Assembly (NCBI GenBank): GCA_001643675.2
Contig: LSRY02000021.1
Location: 682,001-746,000 of the forward strand
Source of the DNA: Monocercomonoides exilis PA203
Lineage: Eukaryota > Protista > Preaxostyla
Reading direction: 5' to 3'
Length of the DNA: 64,000 nt
In this document: positions 1,166 to 36,202 of the stretch, piece by piece
Layout of the letters: every line of letters starts with the position of its first letter
Position numbering within the stretch: position 1 is the first letter of the stretch
Program-made: the position numbers and the translations under genes
The notes under the pieces: model-generated
What the model saw: only the letters and a program-made list of their open reading frames with translations
Told to the model about the DNA's origin: nothing
The model's database searches: none

Positions 1166-1910
1166 AGTCATAGCTTTGTATTGAAGATTTTTTTTAATTG
1201 AAAATTAGTAGCTTCAATTAAGTATTTCTATTAATGTATTTATTAAGCAAATATTTGTTTGCATTTTTATGTTTGAGTGAAATTAACATCAATGATTTTT
1301 TTCTCCAATTTTTTGAGAATTTTCATATTGTTCATTATGGTTGTGAATGCGCCAGTTGGTGCGTTTGCATTTTACGCGTAGCTTTTTGCTTCTGTAGATC
1401 GAAAGGAACAGAGAATTTTTTTTGTTCTGAAAGATTTAAAACAACAAAAGACGGAGCATATCTGTTTTGATTAGCATTTTTCCGATAATGTTTCGCTTTG
1501 ATTCATTACATGTACAACGACATTTTGAAAAAATGGTGAAAGTGTAGAACTCGTCTAAACAGCATTTGTTCACACCATTCAGAATAATTATAAGCTCTAA
1601 AACAAAATTGTAAAAAATCACTTGAAAGTAATAAAAACGACTCCTCAAATCTCAATGTATGATGATTGATTGTCCAAACGAAGCAATGGAAAAATGGAAA
1701 AATGGAAAAATGAAAAAAAAAATTGAAAAAAAGAAAATTAAAAAAAAGAAAATTAAAAAAAAAGAAAAGAAAAGAAAAAGAAAAGTAATAATAATTGAAA
1801 AATTTTCCATGTGTCGAAATGAAAAGTGACAAGATCACAAACAACAGAGTTTGTCTTGGTCAATGCTCAATCATGTGGCCAACAATCAGTAAAAATTTCA
1901 AATAAAGTTA

Positions 1911-1943
<33 letters not shown>

Positions 1944-2918
1944 ACAAAAGACAAGAAAATAAGAAAGACCTTTTCAGAAAATGAAAAGAAAAAGAAAAAT
2001 CAACTTTGCGCATTCACGTTTGATGTTCTAAACAGAAAAGTTAAATACAAACATATTACTCGAGGCATACATATAAGAGCTATTTGCATAAGAACAACAT
2101 TCAAACTAGCTGCAAATACGGCTTTTTGTGAATCTCTCAATTTTATCTCAATAAAATCAAAAATACTTCACAAGCACACAAAGCATCACACAATTGAGAC
2201 GATGATAACGATTATCATAATTTTATTTTATTCAAATAACAAAATAAAAAACAAAAAAATAACCAAAACAGACATTTGGAGAAAATAAAAGCAATGAAAG
2301 TTCAAAAAATTAGATCAAATAAAAATTAAAATTAAAATTAAAATTAAAAATTAAAAACAAGAGCACACATTAATAGCAAAAACAATTTCAAACACATCGT
2401 TGAACAGCGACATCAAGCTGTGCTTAACAACAAATGAACAACATGAACTCATTTCTGTGCAGAAAAAATTCGTATCGTTCTGAAAACAATTGCTTATTCA
2501 AGATGACATTCAACAATTGAATTCTTTATTCCCTTATCTCAGAATAATGTTGGTGCATTCACACTCTCAAACACAAACAAATAAAACTTAAAATCAATCA
2601 ACGAATTAATTAATTATTAAATTAATAATTCAATAGGAAAGAAAGAAAGAAAGAAAGAAAGAATAAATTCATTTATATATTCGTATTTGTTTGTGTTTGA
2701 TTCCTTTGTCTTCTCATAAATACCTCATTTACAGTTATTAACATCATTAACTATCTTAAACATTATCTTTATGTATAACTCTTTTACTTTAAAATTTACA
2801 TATGAAACAACATAGACAGCTTACACCCTCTTCCCTTTTCCCCTTCTCTTCCTTCTCTTCTTTCCCTCTTCCCCTCTTCTCCTCTTCCCCTCTTCCCCTC
2901 TTCTTTCCTTCCATCTCC

Positions 2919-5459
2919 TTACAACTCCGCCTGCATATGCGCCATCTGCTTGTGCGCCTTCATCTTCGCCTTCTCCTTCTCCCTCTCCCTCTTCTTCATC
3001 CGCTCTATGTGGATCGGGCATTCCTTCGAGATATGTCCAATCAGCCCGCACACAAAGCACACCCGCGTGTCCTCATACGTGCACTCACTCGCCCTGTGCC
3101 CTTCTCTCCCGCAGCGGAAGCAGCTCGACTTCGTCACCACTATCCCTTTGTTGTGGTGTGGGCAGTCTTCAAAGCGGTGCAGATGCGACCCGCAGTGGAA
3201 GCACCGGTTCGGCTCTCCGCCTTCTAAGTTGTCTTCTCCTTCGCCTTCTTTCTCGCCTTCAGGGAAGGAGTTCGCCAGAGAGCTTGGAGAAGAGGACAGA
3301 GGTGGTTGGGGAGATGGGGAGGAAGAAGAGGAAGAGAGAGAAGAAGCAGCAGAGGTGGATGAAGAAGAGGAAGAGGAATTTGGAGTTGCAGAAGAAGAAG
3401 AAGATGATGATGATGTCGAACCACCAGTAGACGGAGGATACATCGCCTGTGGCAGCAGCTGCTGTGTCGCTGCAAACTGCTGGCTGGGAATCTGATGCAC
3501 CACTCCCCCTGATCCCATCCCTGTCATCCCACTCATCCCACTCATTCCACTTATTCCATTCATCCCGTTCATCCCACTCATCCCAGCCATCTGTGCTGTC
3601 ATTCTCCCCGTCTGCATTGGATTGTGCTGCACAAACGTGTGTGAGTTCTGCGAGTTTGCCACAGGCACGCCCGGCATCTGGGAGATGGCAGGCACCCCTG
3701 CCATTCCAGGCATCATTGCGTGTGTCTGAGACGAAGGCAGGTGCTGAATGTATGATGTTTGAGGCATCTGGGACATCTGAGGCATCTGAGGCATCTGAGG
3801 CATCTGGGGCAGCTGGCGTAGCACAATGGGACCAGAAAAGGGGATGGCAAAGGAGGAAAAAGCAGAGGGATAGGCAGTCTTTGTGGGGGGAGGCTGCTGA
3901 GGAGCATGAGTGACTGGAACAGGTGAGGCAACAGCGGGTTGATTGGAGGGCATTCCATTGGGCATTGACTGAGGGACAGACTGAAGGAAGACGGGGATGT
4001 ATTGAGCATGTGAGTGAGGTTGGGATGAAAAGGAAGAGGAAGAAGAAGAGGAGGAAGTTGTTGTTATTGGTGGAGATGTTGAAGTGACTGTGGAATTTGA
4101 AGAAGAAGAGGAGGAGGAAGAAGAAGAAGATGATGATGATGTATCTGGAGTGCGGTGGGAAGATGAAGAGAGAGTGGAAGGAGGAGAAGAAGAGCGCAGA
4201 GAGGCAGTCTGTTGTTGGACTTGTGGAAGAGGAGAGGAATGTTGAGTGAGTGAAGTGTCATCCAGGAAAGAGGAAGAAGATGATGGAGATGAAGAAGAAG
4301 ATGATGATGATGATGAAGAGTCTTTATTCATTGAGGATTTGGTTAAGAGCATTGAAGAAGATGAAGAGGAGGAAGAGGAAGAGGAAGAAGAAGATTGAGC
4401 AGAGTTATTTGACTTATCAAATGAAAGAGAAGCCATCGGCTGCTGGAGCTGCGATGCCTGAATGAACATCTCTGACTGAAGTGTGCTTTGAGAAGCAGAG
4501 CCAGCAGACGAAGAGGTTGCAGATGGAGGAGAAGAAGACGATGATGAAGAAGATGAAGAAGATGATGATGATGAATTTGTTGATGATACAGCACCAGCTT
4601 CATTTGACGCAACTGTCGTTGCATTTGCATTTGCATTTGCATTTGAATTCGCATTCGCATTATTCACAGAATACATCTGGCTGTTCAAAGAAGCATACAT
4701 CTTTGCCGGCATGCCATTCGCAGCAGAAGAAAGAGAAGGTGTGAATGACGTGTGCCGCGAATAAGGCTCCGACGACAGATCAAACTGGATCTTCAGGTCG
4801 CTTGTGAATGGAGAGGAAGAATTTGAGCTCTGTGGAATCTGCTGATGGACTGATTGTACTGACTGCATTGATTGCATTTGTTGTGATTGCATTTGTTGTT
4901 GTTGTTGTGATTGTGATTGAGACTGCTGCTGCTGCTGCTGCTGTGTCTGTTGTTGTTGCTGTTGTTGCATTCCAGATGCCTGTGAATGCGAATGCCCCAA
5001 ACTGCTTCGGAACGAACCAGCTCCTGTGCTTGCGTTCGAAATAGAGTTAGAAACAGAAGCTGAAACAGAAGTTGGACTCGCAGTTAGCCCAGAAGCTAAG
5101 CCAGAATTAGAGCCAGAAGCCGAAGAAGCAGCAGAAGCAGAGGCAGATGCTGTATTTGAGTCAGCATTGCTGGAGTGTGTCAATGAATGAAAAGCGCTCT
5201 GGAGATGTTGTGTGCTTGAGACATGAGAGCGGCCAGAAGACTGATTGAAAGAGGAAGGAAGCGAACTGGAGAAGGAAGGGTAGAGAGAAGAAGGAGGGGA
5301 CGTGCTGGAAGTGGCTGAGAGAGAAGCAGCAGAGGAACGAGAAGAGACGGGAGAAGGCGAGCGGAGGGTGGAAGACAAGGAAGAGACTGGATCGTCGAAG
5401 GAGGCAGCGAGGGAGGAAGCTGGCGAGGAGGATGAGGAGGAGGAAGAAGAAGATGAAAG

Positions 5460-20019: not shown

Positions 20020-20389
20020 TTTCTACCCGATCTGCCTTTTTGTTGTCGTTTTCCGGCACGTTTTTCTTTTTCACTTCATTTGTTTTGGGTGCATAAAAAA
20101 AAATTTTTTTTTGTTATTTATTTTCTGTGATATATTCGCTTGAAAGTGGAAGCAAACTTTGGTAATTCCATATATAGGTTGCCACTTTTATTCTTTTGAT
20201 ATTTTCAGAATCTTTCGAAATATTTCCCAATAATAAATTTTTATTAATTAAAATAAATTAATTTAAATTTAATTAAAAAGAAAATGAATGAATGAATGAA
20301 AAAAGAGAAAAATTAAAAGAAAAAAAGAAAGAATGCAATCATCGATTTTTTTTTTTGAGTAAAGTTTATTTAATTAAGAATGTATCATA

Positions 20390-21160
20390 CACCATTTATT
20401 ATTCAAAATTGTTAAACTTATTATTCGAAATTGTTAAACTTCTTATTCAAAATTAATAAAATTCAGTATTTTTTATTTAAAAAATTTTTTGATATAATAC
20501 GATCACTGGCTGAGTGTCAGAAAGTGATTAAAATGTTTTGTTTTTTCATTGTTTTTAAAGGGGATGAAAAATTGAACCCCGATTTTTATTATTTGTGAAT
20601 AAGTATGAAATTTTTTGATTTTTCAGAAAAAAATTGTCATCCATGAAATCGGATATTTTTTCAAATGAATAAACCTCACATTGTTAACACATGCATTTTT
20701 CAATCAAATTATAATATTTATATTTAAATATGCAAAGAAGATCAATAAAAACAAATGAAGAATTCTGAAAGCGCATTAATGGATTTATTCACTAATAAAA
20801 AATTCTTGTTTCCAGTTTGTAAAATTGATACAAATAAAATATTTCGATTGAATGATGCTTTGCCAAGCAATGTGAGGTTTGTTCGTTTGAAAATTATCCG
20901 ATTTCATGGATGACAATTTTTTTCTGAAAAATCAAAAATTTTCATACTTATTCACAAATAACAAAAATCGGGGTTCAATTTTTCATCCCCTTTAAAAACA
21001 ATGAAAAAACAAAACATTTTAATCACTTTCTGACACTCAGCCAGTGATCGTATTATATCAAAAAATTTTTTAAATAAAAAATACTGAATTTTATTAATTT
21101 TGAATAAGAAGTTTAACAATTTTGAATAATAAGTTTACCAAATTTGAATAATAAATGGTG
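20390..21160. mobile_element. 771-bp MITE with ~300-bp TIRs and TA target duplication (Tc1/mariner-type, non-autonomous)
   Basis: TA|CACCATTTATTATTCAAA ... TTTGAATAATAAATGGTG|TA. The arms at ~20390-20695 and ~20866-21160 are highly similar reverse complements. Each TIR begins with about three tandem 22-bp units (TTATTATTCRAAATTGTTAAAC). Confidence 0.9.
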
Positions 21161-21305
21161 TACTGAAACAAAAAGGACATCAATGAAAATAAGTGATTTT
21201 CACTTATTCGTTTTTCTTTTGCTATATAAATGAACAATTGAAGGTTTTTTCATCAGAAACTTAAGGATTTCCACTTATGAAAAACAAGGAGAATTTTGTT
21301 AATAT

Positions 21306-21586: not shown

Positions 21587-21945
21587 CAGTTTGTGCAAAT
21601 AATACCGGATAAGATCGATTTCTCAACAACCGCAAGAAAAAATATTCTGTTAATTTTCCTCAAAATATATCTCTTCAATGCAAACTCAATTGATAAACCA
21701 GTCTTTCCAAACAGCTTCATTTGTGCTCAGAGAGAATTATTTTTAAAAACTCGGAGAAACTCAAAATCTCATGTCTCCGAAATTTCAAATAATAAATTTT
21801 TCAACATACAGTCTTCATGAAAATGGAAGTTTTATATGTCAAATGAGTTTGTATTGATGAGATATATTTTGAGGAAAATTTACAGAATTATTCCTCTTGC
21901 GGTTATTGAGAAATAGATCTTGTCCTGTATTTTTTGCACAAACTG
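21587..21945. mobile_element. 359-bp MITE with ~110-bp imperfect TIRs and Tc1-like CAGT...ACTG ends
   Basis: CAGTTTGTGCAAATAATACCGGATAAGATC... (21587-~21695) pairs with ...GATCTTGTCCTGTATTTTTTGCACAAACTG (~21837-21945). The flanks are TT/TT rather than TA. Confidence 0.8.
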
Positions 21946-22999
21946 TTACACTCATGTTGCAAAAAACATTTGGGTCATTATTTTTCATATCGTAACTTTG
22001 TTCGAAGAAAGATCTTTTTTTAAGTAATTGTGGTATATTTAGAAATAATCAAAAATACATGTTTATAAATAAACAGAAAAAGAATCGTGAATGAATTTTT
22101 GAAAACCAAGTCTCTTTGAGAAAATCAAGAAAATTCCATTATAACATCTATTTATTGAGTTTTTATTTATATCAAAATTATTTGATATCACAACATCGAA
22201 CAAGTCCAATTATCTATTATTGAAGATTCCAACTTGAGTATGATTTAATGACATTATTTTTTTTACTGCTTTTTATAAACTATCATCTCAAAATACAAAA
22301 ATAATTGTTTCATTAAATTTGATTCGAAATTGCAAGGTTTCTTGTTTTTTTTAAGTATTTTTTAAGATGACTTTCTTATTTACGAATGATCAGAATTCAA
22401 TTGAGGACGAATGGAGGTCTTCGAAAGAGGCAAAATATTTTCGTAAGCAATAGTTTTGTTTTTTGAATAATGAGACGGGTTATTAAAAAAATAATAAGGT
22501 TAAATCTTGATTATTACATGTTATCATATCTAACATTATGGATAAAATGTGAAAAGTGACAGCAGTGTTTTATTAAGCTATTATTTTTTGTTTCATCGTT
22601 TTTTGTTTTTTCTTCATTTCAAACGTTGGACTTTGTTAATTTTGTTGAAATGATTATTATCTTTGAAAATTGCACTTCGTTTATCACTGTTAAAACATTA
22701 ATTTGTCCAAACTTAAGTGAGACTTAATTTTTTTGGTTTAAACGATAGAAGAACTTGTTTAACATAATACATTAATTTGATTTCTCATCAAACATATAAT
22801 TATCTTTAGCAATAACAAAATATTTATTTCAATTTACCAGTTCAAAGGTGAAATAAAGAAAAAATATAAAACTAACAACAAATGTGAGGAAAATGACGTG
22901 AAATCAAATAATCCCCAAAAGAATCCATCTTGTTGCTAAGCTTCGTTTAATTCACATATATAAGGAGAATTTATTGTATCTATTCGGTCTGCTCCAAAA

Positions 23000-23560
23000 A
23001 CCTGAAAAGTTGGCAAAAAATTCCTTCCTCCATAACCACTTGCTTTGCATTTCAAGAACTTGCACTAGCTAATCATAACACGCAATTTTATGTTATATAT
23101 ATTCATCCGTCCTCCACCATAAGAATATGCGTAGCGATCATTAAATGAACAAAATTTCACTGAAAGCGTTCCCGATCCCAGGTTATACATGAAAATCGCT
23201 CCACCATTTGAGTCTCCATAAGAATAATTAGAGTTTGTTCCAGTGGTTTTTGACCCATTCCACTCGCACCAAGTGAATGAATTTGCCCCATTGTCTGTAA
23301 TCTGTTGTCTCGCTGGCTTCGATGGATTCCCTTCACTCCCACTGATTGCAACATTCTGTGATAGATAGCACCTGACAAATGAGGTGTTCGAGGCAGCCAA
23401 GGATGATGAGGGGCTGTTCAGCGAGGGGACAATACCCCAGTCATACACATCCCACACCGATGAAAATTCACATCCGCTCATCAGAAACGCTCTTTGACCC
23501 AACCCTTCAGCCAGATGTGATATTTTTGGTGAATTTGAGGAGATGTTGAAGAAGGTCAGT
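23000..23560 (-). pseudogene. Fragment of a GGAI/beta-helix (Pmp-like, adhesin-like) surface protein gene inside the TIR element
   Basis: SSSLAASNTSFVRC...NSFTWCEWNGSKTTG...NGGAIFMY...VKFCSFND..YGGG is followed by an in-frame TAG, after which the repeat continues (CKFLKCKASGYGG). It has no N-terminus or TM anchor. Confidence 0.75.
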
Positions 23561-23639
23561 CGGGTGAGTGTCACAAGGGGTGTCAGGGGAGGCGCCAGAA
23601 ACGGGGCTGAAGACACACAAAAAGATGAGAAATCTGACT

Positions 23640-25677
23640 CACTCACCAATACACTTCCTCCTTCGCTTTCTTCTTCTCTACCTTCTCCTCTTCCTTCTCC
23701 ATCTCTTCCTTCACCTCCTCGCTGTCCTCCTCTCTCTCTTCCTTCATCTCTTCAATGTGATATTCCTTGGTAACCAAAAATATGCCCAAATCCCTTTTCT
23801 TGTCTCTTTCTGCTGCATATGTTATGAATCTCATAAAAAAAAATATAACAGACCTTCGCTGTCAGTGCATTTTTATAATTAATGATCCTATAAAGCTCTT
23901 TCACTAGCTGCTTCAGCTCATTGTCCTTCAGTCGCCATTTTCTGCTATTTTTCTAACCTCGTTAGAACACCAGCGTTTCCAAGTTCCTTGTTCCCTCCTT
24001 GTTGTTGAGCACCCATGCCGAAATTCTAATATCGCAAGATATAAAAAATGAAAGGAATATTAAAATGTAAAAAATAAGAAATATTATTAAAACAGAAATG
24101 GAAAAAGTTATTTTTTAGAATTAATCAAACAAATTTTTGAGGGAATAATCAATCAATCTGATAAAATAAATGCAAACCACTTGTATTTTTGCATTCTAAT
24201 TCTTTTGCCTCCTTTTTCTTATCTTCCTCAGAATAATCCCTTTTCCATATTCTTCTTTTCCTTTCTCTCTTGAGTCTCTTGCTTTTCCCAGCATTCTCCT
24301 TCAATCGCCCGCCATCAGCCAACAATGCTCACTCCCATCGCTCATGCTCCATCCAACTCTTGCCCATCCCTCCAAACTTCACCCACCAACCACCACAATA
24401 AAATACTCCACCAAAATACCATCCACACCAAAACCAGCCAAAACAAGCCAATCTACGAAAAATCATCCTCAATGTCCCATCCTCATCTGACAGCAGCACA
24501 TTCCTTGCCTCATCACACTCTGCCTCCTTTTCCTTTCTTTCTTTTTCTCTCCCCTCGCTAAAATGCAAACAACCACACAAACAACACCAACCACACCAGA
24601 TGCTTCAAATAATTTATCATCGCAGCTTTCCACAGCATCTGAGGATCGCACTGCTTTTGAACAAGAAACAGCTGCAGCAGCAGAAGAAGATGGTGAAGAT
24701 TTTAAAGAAGCGAAGTGTCTTGGAGAAGAAGGTCTAATATGCTGGTTGTGAGGTGGCGACTGCTGCATCGCAAAGCCAGAACAACCAGCATTGTCTGCTT
24801 TTCCTGCTTTGCTATTGAATTTGGCGCTTGACTGAAGTTTCTGAAATGGGAAAGAATGCGAGGCGATTGAGATGAAATGATGAAAATGATGCAGCCAGCC
24901 GAGCAAAAAGGAGTAGTTTTGCTGTTCGGCTTCATGTTGAATAAGGAGAAAGTGGCTGGTCTGGTCAGACAGTGCTGGGGAAAAGCCGTAAATGGACGAA
25001 GGCGATGCAGAAGGTGAAACGAAAGAGGAGAAAGAAGAGAAAGTGGAAGAAGAAACGGAAGTCAGAGAGAAGTTGGAGGTAGTTGAAGATTGAGGCGGAA
25101 GAGGAACTTTCACTTTTCTTGTTCGTTCTGACTGGCTTACGTGCAAATAGAGCATCAAGCTGATCAATTCGATGAGAGTTGAGATGAGAAGAAGAGAGGG
25201 TGAAGGCAAATAAGATAGAAACGAAGAAGGAGATAGAGAACTGATTGAATGCCAGGACTGTATCCAAGGAAGATCAGAAGGGGAAGAAGAAGAAGAAGAT
25301 TGGATGGCTTGTGAAAAGCAATCAGAACCTGAAAATTCATTCTTTCCTTTCAACTTTTCTTCTCCTTCTCTTTCTTCTTTCTCTTCCTCCTCTTCTTTCT
25401 CCTTTTTCCCTCTTCCATTTCTTCCTTTTCTTCCATTTCTTCCTTTTCTTCCTTTTCTTTCTTTTCTTCCTCTTCTTCCTCTTCTTCCTCTTCTTCCTCT
25501 TCTTCCTCTTCTTCCTCTTCTTCCTCTTCTTCCTCTTCTTCCTCTTCTTCCTCTTCTTCCTCTTCTTCCTCTTCTTCCTCTTCTTCCTCTTCTTCCTCTT
25601 CTTCCTCTTCTTCCTCTTCTTCCTCTTCTTCCTCTTCTTCCTCTTCTTCCTCTTCTTCCTCTTCTTCCTCTTCTTCC

Positions 25678-25745
<68 letters not shown>

Positions 25746-26825
25746 TTCTTCTTCTTCTTCTTCTTCTTCTGTTTCTTCTTCTTCTTCTTCTTCTTCTGTT
25801 TCTTCTTCTTCTCCTTCTCCTTCTCTTTCTTCTACCTCTTCTTTCAGTGTCCATTCAAAAATGGCTGAGCAGAAGGCGAATATCATCCTTTCAGCTGAGC
25901 AGGCAACTGGATAGTCTTGCAGTGATGGAGTGCATTGAGGAGAAAAGTGAGGAGAGGATAGAAGCAAATAGAGAAAAAGGAGGAATATGGTTGAGAAGAT
26001 GAGGAAGAAGAGTATATTGAAGATATATCTTCATCTCCTGAATTTGAAGGTTCATCCTCACCATCTTGCTTATCCACTCCACTTTCTTTCTGCTTCACGA
26101 TCTTTTTCGCTTTGTCTTCAGGAAGAATCAGTAGTTTAAAGTGATTTTTCAACAGAACATTCAGAGCAGCTTAGATTTTGCCAAGTTCTTTATCGACTTC
26201 TTCAGCGCTCATTGAAGAAGTACTGGTGATGAAGAGAGAGATGGAGGAGAATAAAGAAGTTGAAATAAAGAAGAAGAAGTGGAAGAAGAAGTGGAAGAAG
26301 AAGTGGAAGAAGTAGAAAAAGAGGAAGAGGAAGAAGAAGAAGAATACGATGGCGATGATGACAAACGCATCAACGAACGTGGTGGCATCGCCTGTTTTGT
26401 TTCTTCGAAATTAAGTCCGAGTGCTTCGCAGCTCCTCCATTCCTTTGCTGCCATCCTTCCAAAGCTCCTCCTTTCCATCGCTCTCTCACATGACCCATTC
26501 CTCCTTTTCCCTCTTCGCTCCTCTTCCTGCCGCTGCAACACCTCGCAGCATCTGTCGGCGCATCTTCATCGCTTTCCTGGGAATCTCCTTCTGCTTTGCC
26601 TTCTTCTCCGTTTCTCATACAGCTTTTCCTCTTCATCTGCATCGCTTTCTTGCCCCTGCCCATCGCTCAAAAAGCTTGCAACCACCCCAACATCCATTTC
26701 CGCCTCCCATTTCTTGAAAGATGCTAACAAAACAAACAAACAAACATGTAAATCAACATATAAATCATCGGCCAAATAATAAAATTTATAAATAAAAAAA
26801 TTCATGCGTCTTTTTGCTAACATCC
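23640..26825 (-). pseudogene. Frameshifted, stop-interrupted, intron-containing Ser/Glu-rich gene relic(s) inside the TIR element
   Basis: Successive minus-strand coding-like pieces in different frames (26566-26823, 26209-26541, 25883-26152, 25350-25967, 24469-25854, 23643-23834) are separated by stops, frameshifts and AT-rich intron-like tracts (e.g. ~24035-24180, ~26727-26800). Confidence 0.6.
25465..25830. repeat. Polypyrimidine tandem repeat (CTTCCTCTT)n grading into (CTT)n; poly-Glu on the minus strand
   Basis: About 25 perfect 9-bp units followed by CTT runs; ~360 bp that is nearly purine-free on the + strand. Confidence 0.95.
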
Positions 26826-28128
26826 ATCAAAATTTTTCTTCTTTGTTTGCACATTTTTATTAATTAACATCAATTCAATCAACTAGTTCGTAAGTTTCAT
26901 TTTAACTTTTCTTTTAATAAAAATTATCTTTGCCTCTTTCGAAGACCTCCATTCGTCCTCAATTGAATTCTGATCATTCGTAAATAAGAAAGTCATCTTA
27001 AAAAATACTTAAAAAAAACAAGAAACCTTGCAATTTCGAATCAAATTTAATGAAACAATTATTTTTGTATTTTGAGATGATAGTTTATAAAAAGCAGTAA
27101 AAAAAATAATGTCATTAAATCATACTCAAGTTGGAATCTTCAATAATAGATAATTGGACTTGTTCGATGTTGTGATATCAAATAATTTTGATATAAATAA
27201 AAACTCAATAAATAGATGTTATAATGGAATTTTCTTGATTTTCTCAAAGAGACTTGGTTTTCAAAAATTCATTCACGATTCTTTTTCTGTTTATTTATAA
27301 ACATGTATTTTTGATTATTTCTAAATATACCACAATTACTTAAAAAAAGATCTTTCTTCGAACAAAGTTACGATATGAAAAATAATGACCCATTTCGTTT
27401 TTTACAAATGAAATTGAATACAAACCTTTTTGATGGATACCAGGTTTGAAAACAATCCTATATTTTTTATTTTTTGCAAAAATAACTTTTTATCTCCTGA
27501 GCACATGTGAAGAGTTAAAAAAAAAATTCAATTCGTTCTTGTTCACACTATTGAGCACAATCAAATTCAAAATTTTTTTCCAAAAGTTCTATTCTTTTTG
27601 AAATTAACACATTTCTCTTATCATTCACTTAAAGAAAAACAACTGACATGAGTTTGGATCTTTTAAAAATTTCCAAAACTTATAATGATAAATCATCATA
27701 TCGATATTGAATGGAATATTTTCGATTACAAATTAAACTTTTTCGATTTCAAATTTAACTTTTTCAATGTAGAATAATTTTTGGTGTATGTTCAACAAAT
27801 GAAGGTTGTTTTTTTTTTTTTTTTTTGTAAACATTCAAAAAAAAAAATTATTAAAAATTATTATTATTTTTTTGAGTTTTTATGAACAGTTTTGATAATA
27901 TCAAAAAAGTCAACATAATTTATTTCTCAATTTACAAAAAAAAATTGTTCTTTCAAAGAAAAACTACACTTTTTGTTTGCGGTTTCGAAATTGAAACATT
28001 TATCATTCAGATAAAAAAAAATATTTTTGCATTATGAACATCATTTGGTTATTTTTGAATATATTTTTTTCGCTTGTTTTGAGATCGAAAATACCCTCAT
28101 TCTTTTCTATCCCTCTTTAAAGTTACAA

Positions 28129-31100
28129 ATGACTTCTTCTGATGAACCGTCAGCCTCTTTTTTATTTGACACAGGAATTCATGGAGCAACAATGATTCAT
28201 TTTAATAAATTCCAAGAAATGTATATTTATAATTCATATTCACTAAAGTTTTTGTAAATATGCTATTTTCAATGTTTTCATTTTAGTTTGTTTTCATGGA
28301 TGTTTGGAATTTCAAAGGTATACTATATATTGTTTTTTTAGTTGATATTTTATTTTATTAAAAAATTTTTTTCTGTTGTAAATTTTTTATGCATTTTTTA
28401 TTTAGATGAGAGAAACAAACGTAATTTACCAATGGATCGTTAATTTATTTTGTGAAATTGAAATGACATTTCTTTTTTTTCAAAATATAATTTGGCCAAT
28501 GGAAACTCCTCATAAATTGAATAATTTTGCTGGATATATCACCTCAATTCATTTTTTAAGGAAAAGCAGCTTTACAATGTACATTCCATTTTGCATAATG
28601 CTGTTTTTCATCATCTTAATGTACATTGCTTCTATTTATCTCGCTTATATTACATCAACAAAAAAACAAATGAATCTGTCAGTTAAATCTTCAATTCGCT
28701 ATTGCGTAATAACTATGGGAAAAATGCTAACAACTCCTCTTCTTATCGTACTCACTACACCAATTACTTGCGACAGTAAAGGAAATATGCAATATTTATC
28801 AAATTCATCTTGCTTTCATTCCATTAACTTAATATTTTTCATTTTGAGTATCATCTTTGTATTGTTGTATGTAATTCACTCTGTATGCTTGTGCGCCTTC
28901 ACTTTCAGTCCTTTAATGAAACATCATGGACCATTTGCGTCTCCTTCTGGAACATTTAATTTTTTCCTTCAGCTGATAATTTGCGTTTTTAGTATTATAT
29001 GTAATATTTTACCTCAAAAACACATTTTGCAAGCAATCATCGGATGTGCGTGCTTCTTTCTACTTGCATTTCTATGTGTTTTGACTCAACCCTATTACAC
29101 AAGACTGGGCAATGCGGCTGTTGCTGTTATGTGTGCCATCCCTGCCACGGTCGGTGTATTTGCTATTATTGCTGCCCACAACTCAGACCCCAACTTACCA
29201 TCACCGCTGGAGGCTGGATCGCCTTACTCAACGACAGTCAAGCCTCCTCTGCGCGTTGTGTTTTGGATTATGTTCTTTTTAGCAATAGCTGCGGTCGCAG
29301 TGCTGACAGCTTGGATGTCTGCGAGTCTGGGGAGGAGGCAATGGCTGATCGACGAAAAAGGAAGGATGATCCAGCTGGGGAAGAAGAAAAAAAAAGGGGG
29401 ATATGCAGAACTCCATGAGAAAGAAGAGGATGAGGATGGAAGCGATTACAGCGAGAACAATGCACTCATGGACATCGAAGGCAATCAAAAGGGAGCAAAT
29501 ACAAGGCTTCACGGCAACGAAACGAGAGCTGGACACACCAAGGATGGGAATGGAAATCAGTTCGACGGAAAAGAGGATGAAGAGAGCAGCGAAGGAGATG
29601 ACAACAGCGACGAGGAAGATGCATTCGACAACAACACTTCATACAACTACAAAAACCCTTCACCAAAAAAGCCCTTTATGAGACCGACTGTTCCATATCT
29701 GACTCGCGCACTTCCCACAATGTCTGCTGCTTCTGGTCTTTCTACCCTCGAAAACGAGCTTTTTTCTCCTCATTTTGTGGCAAATGGCACATCGTCCATT
29801 CTGACATCCTCTGCAGACACGCCTTTGGTGCAGTCGCCTACGCCCTCTTCCTCTGATCTTCAAACAACACAGTTCTACAACTCAACTCGGCAGCGCCCTG
29901 TCGTCTTCTCGCCAACACCCATGTTCCCCATTCGCGGCCCACAGAACTTATCTGCTTCGCCTTTCGATGCAGTCGACCCGCTCGAGCGCAACGTGCAGAG
30001 CATCTTGTCTCCTCCGTTGCAAAAGAGTCTGATTTTTTCTCCGCCTCTGCCAATTCACCCAACCATCAAGGCAGGCGGTTCTTCATCGTCTTTGCCAGGG
30101 TCTCGGTCATCAACTCCGTCTTCCACTGCTCCTTTGGGAAACACACAGAACTCAGCGCGTAAAAAGCCCGAACCAAAATTAAGTTCGAAAACACGAAAGT
30201 TCAAACTCAGCTGCGAAGTGGAGCCAGCGACACGGTTTCTGCAAGTTCCACACATTCGACACCAGGCAAAGTACTTGCGCTTTGCCGAGCGCATATTTCA
30301 GTCTGGGCTGAAGAAGTTTCCGTCATCAGCGTCACTGGCGATCAAATACGCACTCTTCTCTCGCTCGATAACACACGACACACAAAGGGCACTGCTGCTG
30401 CTGAGACACGCAGACACACTCTTCCCGACGCTGATGAGCAGCTGGCTGATATATTCACAGACGAAAGAGTTGGAGGCGCAGGTTATGGAGCACAACAGCG
30501 GGACGGGGCATTTCTTCCTCGACAACGAGGCAGAGATGATGATTCAGATCAGAGAGGCAAAGAACGAGTGCGACAAGGCGCTGGCGTGTGCAGCGTGCGT
30601 CTGGATGAACCTGAGCAAGGCACTGAAGGGAACCGCATCGCTTGTCTCTGACGAAGAGAATGAGAGTGATGAGGAGGCATCTGAAGACGATCATAGCAAT
30701 CACAGCCACAACCACAACAACAACAATAATAATAACAATGAAAAGGAAGATGAGAGCAGAGCTGGGTATAAAGTGAAGAATATCCACAAGAAAGCACACA
30801 AGCACGCAAACATCACAAAGTCCAAGGCGAAGCTCGAAGAGTTCACAAAAAAGCCGCACCGCAGCGAGTTCTTGCACAGCCGCACGACATCGGTTGCCAC
30901 TTTTGGTGAGCCGCCGTCTGCTTCACAGCAATTCCCACTTGGCTCGTCTTCATCCTCTTCATCGTCTTCATCGACGTTGGCATTTCCAATGAGCCATGCA
31001 ACATCGACAGGCACCATCCAGGCGACGTCTTCTCTAGGCGCGTCCATCTCCACGCTCCGCACAATTCCTGTGGCGCGCATCGAGTTCTACGCGGTGGCAG

Positions 31101-34100
31101 CTGTAAAGCATGCGCGCAGCTCCTTCCAGCTGCTGTCGTCGCTGCTGTATAAACACCCGGACTCGACGCTGGTGATGCGCCTGTTTGCGCAGCTGCTGAG
31201 CTCAGTGTGCCACGACGAGGAGGCTGCGGAGATGTTCCTGGACGAGGCAGACATGCTGGACAAGCTGGAGGAGGAGAACGGGAAGGCGCTGGAGGCTGAG
31301 GCAGAGGGCGAGGGCGAGGGCAATCAAGGCGAAGAGAGCGAGTCAGGCTCTGAGCTCAACAACTACAACGAGGAAGACACGTCTTCTGACGAGGCGATGG
31401 AGAACATGTCTGAACTGCTTTCGAAGCTGCCTGCGCTGAAGCTGAAGCTGCCGATACAACAGCAGCAGTCTCAGCACGATGGCTCATCACAGGCTGAACA
31501 GGAGTTGATGCGGAGAAGGAGCAGCGGGGCGTCAGAGAAGGACATTGAAGGCGGGGTGAATGCGACACTGGGAGAAAGGATATTCTCAACGCTCAGTGTG
31601 AAGGATGCCCATCTGATGTCTGAGAACGAGATGGAGGTGACGTCGAGGTCTGCGCGGTGGAAGAGAGAAGATCGGGACAACGACCAGCTGAAGCGAGACG
31701 GCAAAGCAAGCTGCAGCTCCCCCGACGCACCGAGAAAGAAAGGGATGGAGACAGAATCGAGTGAGTATCTGCTGCGGAAGATTTCAGACAAAATGGACAG
31801 CAGGCTGTCGATCAACGACACTTCTGAGAAGATCACCACTGCCAGCACATCCGCCTCTGCGAAATCGACCTGCTCTAGACGTGCCATCGAAGGCGCTGGG
31901 TCGTCCTTGACGCGGCTGAGCAAAGCAGAACAGAGCTCGACGCTTCTGCTGCAGCGGCAGAGCAGCTCGCTCTACCTGCACAGCCAGATGCACCCGACCA
32001 TCCTCCGCAGCAGCTCCTCCTACGGTGACCAGCTTGCCCCGTCGTCACGTTCAAACAGCCGCCGAGAAGCTGTGCTGGAGCTCATCAACGACGGCAGCAA
32101 GCCGAACTTCCGCTCGTCGTCGCATGTGTTTGCGCTGCGAAAGCAGCTGAACAAGCAAGGGGCCGGGTCGAGCCACGAGACGCTGGTGCACTCGTCACGC
32201 AATGTGTCTGAGGTTGACGACAGGAACGGCGACGACACAGCCACACACGTCTCTCGCCCTGGGCGCACACGCATGGGCAGGGCGCTGAACATGTTTGACC
32301 GGAAGATGCAAACGAAGCGGCAGAAGAGCGCTGAGATGATGATGCGGTCGGTGCAATCGATGAAGATGAAGAAGTCAGCGTATTCATTCCGTGTTGCCCT
32401 GGTGCACATCATCGTTGCCTCTATTCTTGTAATCTCTTCCATGTTCTGGCTGTCCATCCACGAAGGGCAGGACATCATACACGCCCAGTGGAATCTGAGG
32501 GACATGGGGATGATTGCTATCCACGCAGCTTCTCTCAGCATCTCTGCACACGACCTCTACGCAATCAAGACACACCCACATGCCTTTAGCACAGACTCTT
32601 CGAGTCAAATGCATCTTCACACGTTTCTGGAAGGGTCTGTGCAGTTTCCTCATTTAAATCATTTTGATTCTTCATCATATTCGCCTCCTCGCTCACTTCA
32701 CAGCAGATCACCTCCACATCATTTGTATTCAAATACACAACATTCTTCACTTCACTCTGCGAACATTTCAAAAGTTGATTTTGCTTCTCAAAGGAATCAT
32801 ACACACATTTCACAATCAGAACAGCCATTTCATAGCTCATTTCACATTCATCCATTCTTTCATCACACTTCGTCGTCACTTCAGCCATTTCGGCAAACAC
32901 ATTCATTTCATCCTCAACACCCAGAAATAAACTTCACTTCAACCTCGGAATCACCATCAGTATCACCATCACCATCGTCATCTGCACCTGATCCACTGTT
33001 TATCTCAAACAACACAACACCTCCTTCTTTGCTTCATCCACACGCTCCAAATACATTCGAAGCAGACTATCCATACATCGAAGACATCAACACAGTCCGA
33101 ATGCGCATGAAGCACGCCTCCTCCTTCCTGAACTACTTCCTCAAAATGGCATACGACGAGTCTCCGCTCCAGTTTGAGTCGTGGAAGAACCATCTTTTCC
33201 GGCTGTTCTGCGGCACTCAGAACCGAACCACGGGAATTCTGCATGTGCAGAGCAAGTCAATTGGCCTGCTTGATCTCGTTGGTGAGTTTGCATCGACTGG
33301 ACACTTAGTGCTGGACACGCAGGTGGCGAGCAGTCAGACTGAAATTGATGCGCTGCTGCTGCTGCTGATGGATGGCCCTCTTTCTGTTGTGGAGGCGCTG
33401 AAGCAGGTGATGGCGACTGTTGTCTTCCACCTGGAGGCAAACCTGATTGTGTACCAGGACGTGTTTATTGGCGTCACTGCATTCACATTCTGCTTCTGCT
33501 TAGTTACAATTCTGTGTGTGACATGGGTGAATGTCAGGCGCGTCATCAAAAGCAGACGGAACGCCATCTTCCAGCTCTGCAACAGCTGCGGGAACCATGT
33601 TGAGAAGCGGCTTGCCGAAACGTATTTGATGCTCATTGGTGACGACGAGAGCAACGAGAAGCAGCAGGAGAAGGAAAGACTGGAGCAGCAGAGAGTGCTG
33701 AATGAAGGAATGAACATTCCCAATGCAAACAGAGAGAACACCGAAGCGTCTTCCATCCGCCCGTCGCCAAGTGTGATCAGGCTGAAGATGCAGCGGAGAG
33801 ACGAACTGCAGAGCAGCGAGATCAACCTGAAGGTGTATGAGTCAGCATCCCGCTTCGAAAAGCAGAACAGCCATAGCGTTTTACCAGAGAACTCACCGTA
33901 TGCTGCTGTTTCTGCAGCTGCTTCACAAGTAAGTACTGCAGAACAAAGCGACGGAGCCAGCAACAAGATCGGGTCGCCTATAAAGGAAGGGCTTTCAGAA
34001 CGGTCTGCTGCTTCTTCGGCTTCACGGCAGTCGATTCTCTCTTCAGGAAGCGAATCAGTTGAATCTGCTGCACACAGTTCAGTTGCCTCGCTGAGGCCGA

Positions 34101-36202
34101 TGTTTTCACAGCAAGCGAATCAGTCGCTGCATGGTAATGCTTCTAATTCTGTTCAGATGGCAAATTCAATTGGAAGCAGAAAACACGCCAAAGCAAACGG
34201 AATCGATGATAGCAATTTATCGCAACAAGATGGTCAACAAGAAAAAAACTATTTTGCACAGAACGCAAATGGTTTTACACCGCAAATCAATCCTTCATTA
34301 AATGCATTTCCTTCAAATTTCATCCCTTCTCCATTGTTTACGCAAGGCAACGAAATGCATATACCTCAGGATGCTTCATCTGACATTCCTTCTCCTTATC
34401 TCACCACACCCATGCCTTCTCCTTTCATGTACCCTCAATTTGGAGCTAATTACTATTCAACTCCTTCTCCCTTCCCTCAAAGCATCCCAGGCAACCAGAT
34501 GCTTCCATACCAGACTTCTCCATTCCAATTCGATTCAAACATCCAACCGAAAGATGGACAGCCTCCAATCAGCAGCGATTTCCTCCAACAGCAGCACATG
34601 CAACAGATGCAACAGATGCAGCAAATTCAGCAGCAACAGCAGCAGATTGAACAATTGAAGCAGCAATTGCAGATGCAGATGCAACTGACACAGCAGGCAC
34701 AGAATGCACAGAATGCACAGAATACTCAAAATGCACAACAAATGCAGCAAATACAGCAAGCACAACTGACACATCACTCACAGCAATCTTCTTCTGACTC
34801 TCCACCCAGCACTAACACCACTCCAACTGCTCCGAAGTTTGTGAAGGAGCATTCGCTTTCTTCGCTGATTGTTCCGCCTGCACTGTCGCAGGACGGCTCG
34901 ATTTCAGCTCAGTCAAGAGTCGATGCAGCAAACACAGCGAACACGAACAAGATGAAGCTGGCGAGATCTCTTTCGTCTTTGATGAACATCGAAAATCCGC
35001 TGAGATCGTCCAGCTCTCAGCTGCAGCAGCTGAAGAGAAGACAGACACGCGTCTTCGACTCCTCGTTTTCTCTGGCAGGCCATCCGTCTTTGCACCTCTC
35101 GAAGTTTGCTGCGAATGTACCCCATCCGCAGCAGTCGTCAAGGATCAACATGTTGGAAGACACAAATGCCCAGCAGAAAGGAACAACGCTGGACGAAGAC
35201 GAAATCGAAGAGCTGAAGGAAAAAATCGCGCTAATCAAAAACCCACTTTCGGGACATTTCTTCCTGTTCTTTGCGATTGGAGTGGTTGGGCTGATTGTTG
35301 GGTGGGTGCTGGCTGTTGTTCCTGTGATCATCTTCCTCTTTACTCTCCTCACATTCACACCAACATCGCTCGCTGCTGCCATCCGTGCCACGTCTGCCAT
35401 GCAGATGGGATATCTTGCACAGCAGCTTGTCTATCGCGACACACCAAACATAAACCAGGCGATTCCGTTGGATTATGTCACACACTCCACATGGCAAGGG
35501 CTGGAGCACATGAGCACGAACTGGGAGCAGATACGTTCGCTACTGTCGAACCAGATTGATTACTTTATCAATATCAACAGGCTCCTCCGCTACGGTTCTG
35601 CACCGAAGCCACGCTCAAAGATATTGGAGCATTACAAGAAAAAGAACGACATACTGCTGTTACACAGCGACTTGTTCTCGTTGATAGAAATCAAGCGGAC
35701 TACTGGCAGATGGAAAGAGCTGGACAACTTCAACCAGGTGACGCGGAGTTGCTTCTTGCTGAATGAAAGCGAATGCACACCCGAGCGATTGGGAGGGATG
35801 AAGTGCGAGTTCATTGGCTTTGACAATCTGATTGACATTCTGATCAAATACTCAGTGGAGCTGGCAGCCAAGCGGCAACAGGAGGATTTATCGCCTTCTT
35901 TGCACGAGTTTGGCTATGTTTACCGACTGATAAGGATGGATGTGGTGCAAGGGCTGTGCCAATATACAGAAATTCTATTAAACTGCAGCGTTGACCAGAT
36001 TCAGACAAACATTAATGTTGTTATTGGTTGCTTTGCTGCTGGAATCTCGCTGATTTTCATCTGTCTACTAATTGTAATGCATCCGCTTGACAAAGAAGTT
36101 AGCTCCATTCTTCAAACAAACGAGGAAATCAAACTGTTTTTGTGCCACACAGAAGAAGAATTGGATCCAGATGTGAAAAAGAGAGACCTTTCTGTTACAT
36201 GA
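28129..36202 (+). CDS. TmcB/TmcC (tiny macrocysts)-like multi-pass membrane protein, ~2640 aa
   Basis: N-terminal multi-TM block with VLTQPYY. TPR-like segments AERIFQSGLKKFPSSASLAIKYALF and PDSTLVMRLFAQLLSSVCHDEEAAEMFLDEA. Two later TM pairs flank extracytoplasmic domains. Two small 5' exons (28129-28220 and ~28288-28317) precede the 28406 exon. Confidence 0.75.

Follow-up and report, generated by a model that had tools for sequence, protein, structure and literature searches.

The stretch of DNA analysed here, hereafter the window, comprises 64,000 nucleotides of the genome of the oxymonad protist Monocercomonoides exilis PA203 (contig LSRY02000021.1, positions 682,001 to 746,000), and its positions 21972-27391 are occupied by a 5.4-kb element, referred to below by the GGGTCA with which its ends begin. 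The element is enclosed by two terminal inverted repeats (TIRs, or arms), starting with GGGTCA and ending with TGACCC, both 100% identical to the query in a whole-genome search, with a spacer of about 4.5 kb between them and a copy of ATTT on either side as the target-site duplication (TSD; Table 1). Direct reading together with the genome search bore out the coordinates, the identical 463-bp arms and the ATTT flanks given in a first-pass annotation of the window, and likewise its remark that this copy has no transposase, the interior open reading frames (ORFs) being of low complexity or without a Pfam match. The description of the interior as about 4.5 kb of minus-strand gene relics held in part: pieces of two unrelated genes are there, but about 0.56 kb is element backbone and about 1.5 kb is the upstream region of a host gene, neither of which is a coding relic. 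The backbone, or left block, has no ORF of at least 50 amino acids (aa) and matches a host gene only in its last ~70 nt; 16 of its 18 long genome matches adjoin or lie inside family copies with located ends, and the other two are unplaced.

Table 1. Features of the GGGTCA element, in window positions.
Feature	Position	Strand	Remarks
Left TSD copy, ATTT	21968..21971		Read directly; direct, non-palindromic repeat of 27392-27395
Left TIR, 463 bp	21972..22434	+	100% identity with right arm; conserved throughout the family in its first 55-60 bp, GGGTCATTATTTTTCATATCGTAACTTTGTTCGAAG...
Left block, non-coding family-specific backbone	22435..22992		Genome matches almost all at family copies
Cargo 1: 5' part and ~1 kb of upstream region, Cys/Gly-repeat orphan gene family	22993..24690	-	Colinear with host loci L056 and L059
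Gene model MONOS_15191, 247 aa, two exons	23068..24016	-	Annotated protein P0116 maps exactly, in two pieces
Cargo 2: internal fragment (~aa 979-1409) of a Ser/Glu-rich ORF of at least 1577 aa	24676..26341	-	Intact copy at C36:1.13 Mb
Right block: distal cargo 1, far-upstream region of the Cys/Gly-repeat host gene family	26295..26802	-	88% identity to L056 3386-2867
Short stretch between cargo and right arm	26803..26928		Also in other family copies; no host-locus match
Right TIR, 463 bp	26929..27391	-	100% identity with left arm
Right TSD copy, ATTT	27392..27395		Direct repeat of 21968-21971

The flanks 21952-21971 and 27392-27411 are complementary in about 16 of their 20 outer bases (tcatgttgcaaaaaacattt vs tcatttgtaaaaaacgaaat), although the TSD next to the element is a direct repeat. 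This complementarity could have arisen by chance in A-rich DNA, or it could stem from an old conversion tract or from a target that was palindromic.

The genome searched was the M. exilis PA203 assembly (82,301,135 bases in 101 contigs), the loci and contigs of which carry L- and C-numbers, respectively (for instance L032 and C36). A search with the outermost 30 nt of the arm, allowing up to three mismatches, gave 61 ends, 33 of them exact, and none for the reversed control; the first 19 nt mark 159 ends, with one in the control, a count that takes in the sister families GGGTGA...GATAT and GGGTCA...GAAAT. At least 22 paired copies were found, 2.2-10.7 kb in length and all with unrelated flanks, and the family amounts to about 30 related copies. 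The arm is thus multi-copy and paired, on which the first-pass annotation of a mobile family depended. Across 21 copies, the terminal 60 nt are conserved at 92-99% and the remainder of the arm at 53-91%, a pattern that looks like a transposase-binding end. One locus, L055 (C27:138521-148307), has two plus-strand ends, each preceded by atacATAT, and a single minus-strand end; here the left flank and most of an element are duplicated in tandem, with a period of 4.1 kb.

The 4-bp TSDs noted at the window copy recur in the family, since 18 of the 22 pairs have identical 4-nt flanks (ATAT in 14, ATTT in three and AGTT in one). Because ATAT is palindromic, only the four non-palindromic pairs (three ATTT and one AGTT) are informative, and all of them are direct repeats. 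The outermost A and T are invariant in 22/22 copies, giving a target A-N-W-T that is mostly ATAT; the two central bases are TA in 18 copies and TT or GT on both sides in the remaining four. Two paralogous empty sites confirm the net gain of 4 bp. At L032, removal of the copy and of one AGTT yields an uninterrupted pogo transposase frame, colinear with its paralogue (PLDRGVFATLKTSLSSSFDVPSS vs PLDRGVFAVLKSEMSSQYEAPSS). At L037, the copy splits a foldback MITE (miniature inverted-repeat transposable element), whose intact arm reads ...GGACAAGATCGATTTC and whose filled site reads GGACAATAT[element]ATATCGATTTC.

We found no transposase belonging to the family in any of the 22 paired copies analysed, and two candidates from the long copies were rejected. 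The DDE_1 (pogo) ORFs of L050 and C32 are not the family transposase; that of L050 lies inside a 2.05-kb pogo nested in the right arm, which has its own TIRs and TA and is 92% identical to a copy elsewhere. The D5/VapE-like helicase of the 10-kb copy on C36 is not a gene of the element either, as it belongs to a nested 4.6-kb element with 675-bp TIRs that is present at no fewer than 30 loci elsewhere. This second passenger runs from L044 2134-5568 into L045 to 1164 (C36:1034666-1039264), its TIRs are 99.3% identical, and its ORF of 635 aa has DUF5906/VapE-like D5-type helicase domains (E=3e-21); it has 81 matching pieces at its 30 or more loci, several of them as outward-facing inverted pairs, and it could represent a virus-like or self-replicating family.

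Comparison with described superfamilies placed the family outside several of them. It is not a Pack-MULE (MULE, Mutator-like element), as a 4-bp TSD stands against 8-11 bp (7-12 bp) and the termini are not those of MULEs, nor a Pack-CACTA, given GGGTCA ends and a net TSD of 4 bp against CACTA termini and 2-3 bp. The TTAA target of piggyBac and Kolobok occurs at none of the 22 copies, and the invariant TA of Tc1-mariner/pogo is contradicted by the four copies that duplicate TT or GT, the other 18 being compatible with it. The first-pass proposal of a gene-fragment-carrying TIR family that is neither MULE nor CACTA is therefore upheld by the 4-bp TSD, the GGGTCA ends, the multiple copies and the host fragments. 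Sola2-type elements have AT-rich 4-bp TSDs described as AWWT (ATAT, AAAT, ATTT; PMC3627910), and AT-rich 4-bp TSDs were found here in 18/22 pairs, with the net 4 bp at the two empty sites; Sola TIRs range from 11 to 1124 bp (PMC10741241). The TSD signature fits Sola2 and not Sola1, which makes membership in Sola2 plausible. The AWWT preference had been ascribed to Sola1 in the first pass; the cited work reports it for Sola2-type elements and does not show it for Sola1 (PMC3627910). Under the Repbase rule for non-autonomous elements, the TSD length must be equal and positions 1-11 of the termini must agree with at most one mismatch (PMC4455052), and GGGTCATTATT falls outside this rule when compared with GAGCATTTATT... 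of DFa-2, the sole Sola2 end used in the comparison.

The two blocks of cargo 1, 22993-24690 and 26295-26802, represent one host segment of about 2.5 kb. In the copies L032 and L040, cargo 1 is unbroken and for 2.2-2.4 kb colinear with host locus L056 of the C42 cluster, where the segment starts far upstream, spans the promoter region and takes in the first ~310 codons of a Cys/Gly-repeat gene; identity to the genes of this cluster is about 85%. The right block is common to at least 17 family copies, and cargo 1 is present in most copies with shared end points, which argues for one old capture, before the spread of the family. The idea that the capture was private to the window copy had to be given up, most of its cargo being a contiguous host segment common to most of the family.

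The Cys/Gly-repeat family is very large and specific to M. exilis (1915 first-look candidates), and the protein relatives of cargo 1 are all MONOS_ proteins of this organism, the matches listed being all 'uncharacterized'. An AlphaFold model of MONOS_15191 built with 40 paralogues reached a predicted local distance difference test score of 38, with no usable fold, Pfam gave Beta_helix in one of 40 members of the cargo family (E=0.008), and the family profile matched nothing among solved structures; a 'Pmp-like/beta-helix' label for the protein would rest on its repeat motifs. The chromosomal members of the family (C42, C71, C53, C80) often occur in convergent inverted pairs of near-identical copies, separated by about 5 kb, such as C71:60271-61551 (+) and 65759-67039 (-), and their orientation alternates along C42; the family seems to be generally marked by inverted duplication.

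Cargo 2, of 1.67 kb, is unrelated to the gene of cargo 1, and its match is absent from all other family copies examined. It is 81-82% identical in DNA to L057 (C36:1.13 Mb) and 67-68% to the paralogue L058 (C29); at the protein level identity is 72-80%, with one in-frame stop and an expanded CTT/GAA repeat. In three-way alignments, both of its junctions fall inside (GAA)n tracts of donor and recipient. A separate subfamily (L035, L036, L052 and L053) retains part of the ancestral upstream region together with another fragment of ~1.8 kb, which is 90% identical to C1:372-374 kb. With three host fragments in the family, there were at least three gains of host DNA, and such gains are Pack-type behaviour. 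The further traits of such elements are also present: TIRs and a TSD, multiple copies and no transposase of their own, interiors that come from host genes elsewhere and were taken as DNA (cargo 1, cargo 2 and the third fragment), and fragments of different loci within an element that differ between copies.

The gene model MONOS_15191 lies on cargo 1, with exon 1 at 24016-23957, a predicted intron of 208 nt at 23956-23749 and exon 2 at 23748-23068, and its frame terminates within the element backbone. Gene annotation falls on element cargo in five copies (MONOS_15191, 6381, 3459, 15980 and 8708). Over 215 codons, the cargo frame is free of stops in 9/10 copies, with a ratio of nonsynonymous to synonymous substitution rates (dN/dS) of 0.17-0.48; between two chromosomal Cys/Gly-repeat genes the ratio is 0.26. 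The word 'rotten', used for the cargo in the first-pass annotation, does not suit an annotated frame that is open in nearly all copies; the stop is confined to the copy-specific cargo 2. Of the sampled words of the stretch, 48-85% are present in the 2016 and 2022 DNA runs of the source sample, and 18-25% in RNA runs from an independent study (2024), so some part of the stretch is probably transcribed.

The arms present a particular pattern. Within a copy they are 96-100% identical over 346-1210 bp in 19/22 copies; between copies the median identity of the arms is 70%, and the nearest relative of the window copy stands at 89%. The copies differ from one another by 11-30%, with no pair above ~96%. 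The inner segment of the arm is too diverged between copies to show which arm would have converted the other. At L035 the identity of the arms runs 21 nt outward past the element ends, and at L040 it runs at least 500 nt outward, the TSD flanks of the latter being inverted (ATTT/AAAT) and not direct; the variable arm length and the outward-running identity are consistent with conversion tracts. We call for arm homogenisation because cut-and-paste transposition cannot reset differences between arms, yet the arms match within copies only. L040 (C80:1138437-1145246) is also the midpoint of a palindrome at least 8.8 kb long, with helicase codons 140-635 extending outward on both sides, and at its positions 1317-3316 it holds a nested element, GGCATA...TATGCC, with 524-bp TIRs of 100% identity and a perfect 8-bp duplication GATGTTTA.

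The cargo has a history of its own. Between L038 and C21, the backbone is 94-99% identical and the cargo 85-90%, trees of backbone and cargo group the copies differently, and host genes are interspersed among the element cargo. The simplest reading of this mosaic would be repeated gene conversion between element cargo and many paralogues, and conversion of this kind would import substitutions already filtered by selection.

Taken together, we consider it probable that 21972-27391 is an old copy of a non-autonomous cut-and-paste family that carries transduplicated host DNA and has homogenised arms. Each element consists of transduplicated host DNA and a family-specific backbone of ~560 bp. The ancestral capture, ~2.5 kb in length, brought in the upstream region, the predicted intron and ~310 codons from the start of the Cys/Gly-repeat orphan gene; later gains are specific to lineages, namely 1.67 kb of the Ser/Glu-rich gene in the window copy and ~1.8 kb like C1:372-374 kb in the other subfamily. 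Cargo 2 may have entered by microhomology-mediated template switching or by ectopic gene conversion. The identity of the arms would stem from arm-to-arm gene conversion and not from recent transposition, and the cargo would keep exchanging sequence with genomic paralogues, which would give it an open frame and a low dN/dS. Movement would depend on a transposase acting in trans on the conserved termini, for which a Sola2-type DDD enzyme is the likeliest candidate by the TSD signature.

Other explanations accommodate parts of these data. Identical arms would be expected of a young copy, moved very recently and still mobilised in trans; the 100% identity and the intact TSD of the window copy agree with it, and the lack of a near-identical relative does not speak against it, as cut-and-paste leaves no sibling. 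Such movement, however, leaves the differences between arms in place, and it does not explain how nearly every copy came to have arms of 96-100% identity while the copies differ by 11-30%, or why arm length ranges over 346-1210 bp and identity runs past the ends at L035 and L040, which are marks of conversion tracts and not of transposition. We regard a recent move as improbable and favour arm-to-arm homogenisation. The first-pass annotation had offered both to explain the pristine ends; ongoing homogenisation stands, with arms at 96-100% within copies and the nearest copy at 89%, and of recent mobilisation there is no sign. It is rather unlikely that the main cargo is a working gene under selection, a transposon-borne member of the orphan family, even though its frame is open in 9/10 copies with a dN/dS (0.17-0.48) matching the 0.26 of chromosomal genes, an upstream region is retained along with a predicted intron, five copies of it carry a gene annotation, and about one in four sampled words of the stretch is found in RNA runs. 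The element-borne versions are all truncated (221-448 aa vs 550-700 or more) and run into the backbone, three copies have single-base frame breaks, and the discordant histories of cargo and backbone mean that gene conversion from paralogues under selection can bring in a low dN/dS.

The element could also be read as a non-autonomous derivative of pogo/Tc1-mariner whose TIR starts TGGGTCA..., with a 2-bp TSD (usually TA), moved by the pogo (DDE_1) transposases, which are highly abundant in the genome (1201 first-look candidates). ATAT|GGG is equally well parsed as A-TA-[TGGG...CCCA]-TA-T, the central TA is found in 18/22 copies, and the nested pogo of L050 has ends TA|GGGTGGTTTTTTTATCCGG that loosely resemble GGGTCATTATTTTTCATATCG. 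Against this, four insertions have TT or GT on both sides, whereas Tc1/mariner is described as always using TA (PMC10741241), a separate target preference would have to be added for the outer A and T, invariant in 22/22, the pogo copies within family members are nested insertions with ends of their own, and the similarity between pogo and family ends falls in T-rich sequence; we think a pogo origin quite unlikely. That there is no mobile element at all, and that the structure is a local inverted duplication or an artefact of nanopore assembly, is hardly credible. The genome is indeed rich in inverted duplications, including many inverted gene pairs and the 3.4-kb arms at 16785-20150/36587-39963 in the window itself, but at least 22 copies are scattered over unrelated loci, their ends are sharp and identical, they have 4-bp TSDs and two paralogous empty sites, and the DNA runs of 2016 and 2022 contain 48-85% of the sampled words of the stretch.

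Several observations weigh against the account of an old, homogenised, Sola2-like Pack-type family that we prefer. The arms of L053 are 76% identical beside a perfect ATTT TSD, and homogenisation is accordingly not universal; moreover, ten rounds of short-read polishing of the assembly (PMC8767320) could have erased small differences between arms. The cargo tree is star-like and includes only two host genes, so the single capture rests on shared end points and not on phylogeny. The 4-bp TSD is equally readable as a 2-bp duplication with TIRs starting T...A, as an outer A and T at every copy make the two readings indistinguishable. We could tie no transposase to GGGTCA ends; Pfam has no Sola model (PMC5751038). 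Among multi-copy USP (PF00443) ORFs on C1-C19, considered as candidates for the autonomous partner, two of 11 loci lie within 10 kb of a GGGT[CG]ATTATTTTT end and one within 15 kb, about the level of chance, and the commonest type of USP ORF has none of its eight loci within 10 kb of a GGGT[CG]ATTATTTTT end on the same contigs.

The surroundings of the element in the window contain further repeats. The 3.4-kb inverted repeat (93% identity) encloses the GGGTCA element, two small foldbacks and an ORF of 2598 aa at 28406-36199; no sharp TIR ends or TSD were seen for it, and it may represent a giant element or else an inverted segmental duplication. One of the foldbacks, of 775 bp at 20388-21162, has 273-bp arms (98%) and ends TA|CACCATTTATTATTC, and it looks like a pogo/mariner-type MITE. 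The other, at 21587-21945, is a foldback MITE of ~350 bp with ends CAGTTTGTGCAAA...CCGGA. Copies of the CAGTTTGTGCAAA MITE are found 3-1000 bp from five GGGTCA copies (window, L037, C32, C36 and L032), the L037 copy being inserted inside one; this proximity may reflect a target preference or shared AT-rich neighbourhoods.

The published M. exilis genome, a nanopore assembly, contains 46% repeats, and 35% of the assembly is 'unclassified', often overlapping large gene families (PMC8767320). Transduplication followed by gene conversion between cargo and paralogues would offer a concrete mechanism for part of this 35%. The capture of gene fragments by TIR transposons is documented mainly in plants (MULE and CACTA); here it occurs in a metamonad protist with a 4-bp AWWT integration signature, and Pack-type gene carriage is not yet described in the oxymonads. 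The (GAA)n microhomology at both junctions of one acquisition is a direct clue to how a fragment enters, and long TIRs held identical for a long time are a warning against dating elements by the divergence of their arms. As a speculative and rather doubtful extension, GGGTCA and its sister long-TIR families might be mobile cassettes of the largest orphan gene families of M. exilis, with promoter-bearing 5' modules that are transcribed, kept open and swapped with paralogues by gene conversion. If so, transposons would drive the spread and diversification of orphan families, in a donor-cassette system reminiscent of the archives of antigenic variation, and the cassettes could explain part of the 35% of unclassified repeats that overlap gene families.

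Sex-chromosome palindromes and plastid inverted repeats undergo arm-to-arm gene conversion. As in them, the arms of the M. exilis copies stay near-identical while lineages diverge, and the boundaries of the arms shift; unlike them, the arms here form the two ends of a mobile element and are separated by a 4.5-kb spacer, and conversion is the mechanism that we infer for them. The pogo/Tc1-mariner MITEs of M. exilis resemble the family in their T-rich ends, starting GGGT after TA, and in a target mostly centred on TA, and differ from it in that 4/22 TSDs of the family are non-TA, its outer A and T are invariant and its arms are far longer. The dictyostelid Sola2 elements DFa and PPa (Bao and Jurka 2013, PMC3627910) share with it the AWWT TSDs, chimeras with one end in common, unrelated passengers and derivatives deleted for the transposase, and Sola TIRs can reach 1124 bp (PMC10741241). 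The end of DFa, GAGCATTTATTTCT..., resembles GGGTCATTATTTTTC loosely. The dictyostelid elements, however, have TIRs of 12-21 bp, a known Sola2 DDD transposase and Fanzor as a passenger, whereas those of M. exilis have TIRs of 350-1200 bp and fragments of host genes as passengers. Pack-MULEs and Pack-CACTAs are likewise non-autonomous TIR elements with fragments of host genes at the DNA level, upstream region and intron included, and their fragments are also multiple, differ between copies and are in some cases annotated as genes. The M. exilis family is set apart from them by its 4-bp A-N-W-T TSD in place of 8-11 or 2-3 bp, by its GGGTCA ends and its oxymonad host, and by an old shared capture whose cargo is in exchange with a very large paralogous family.

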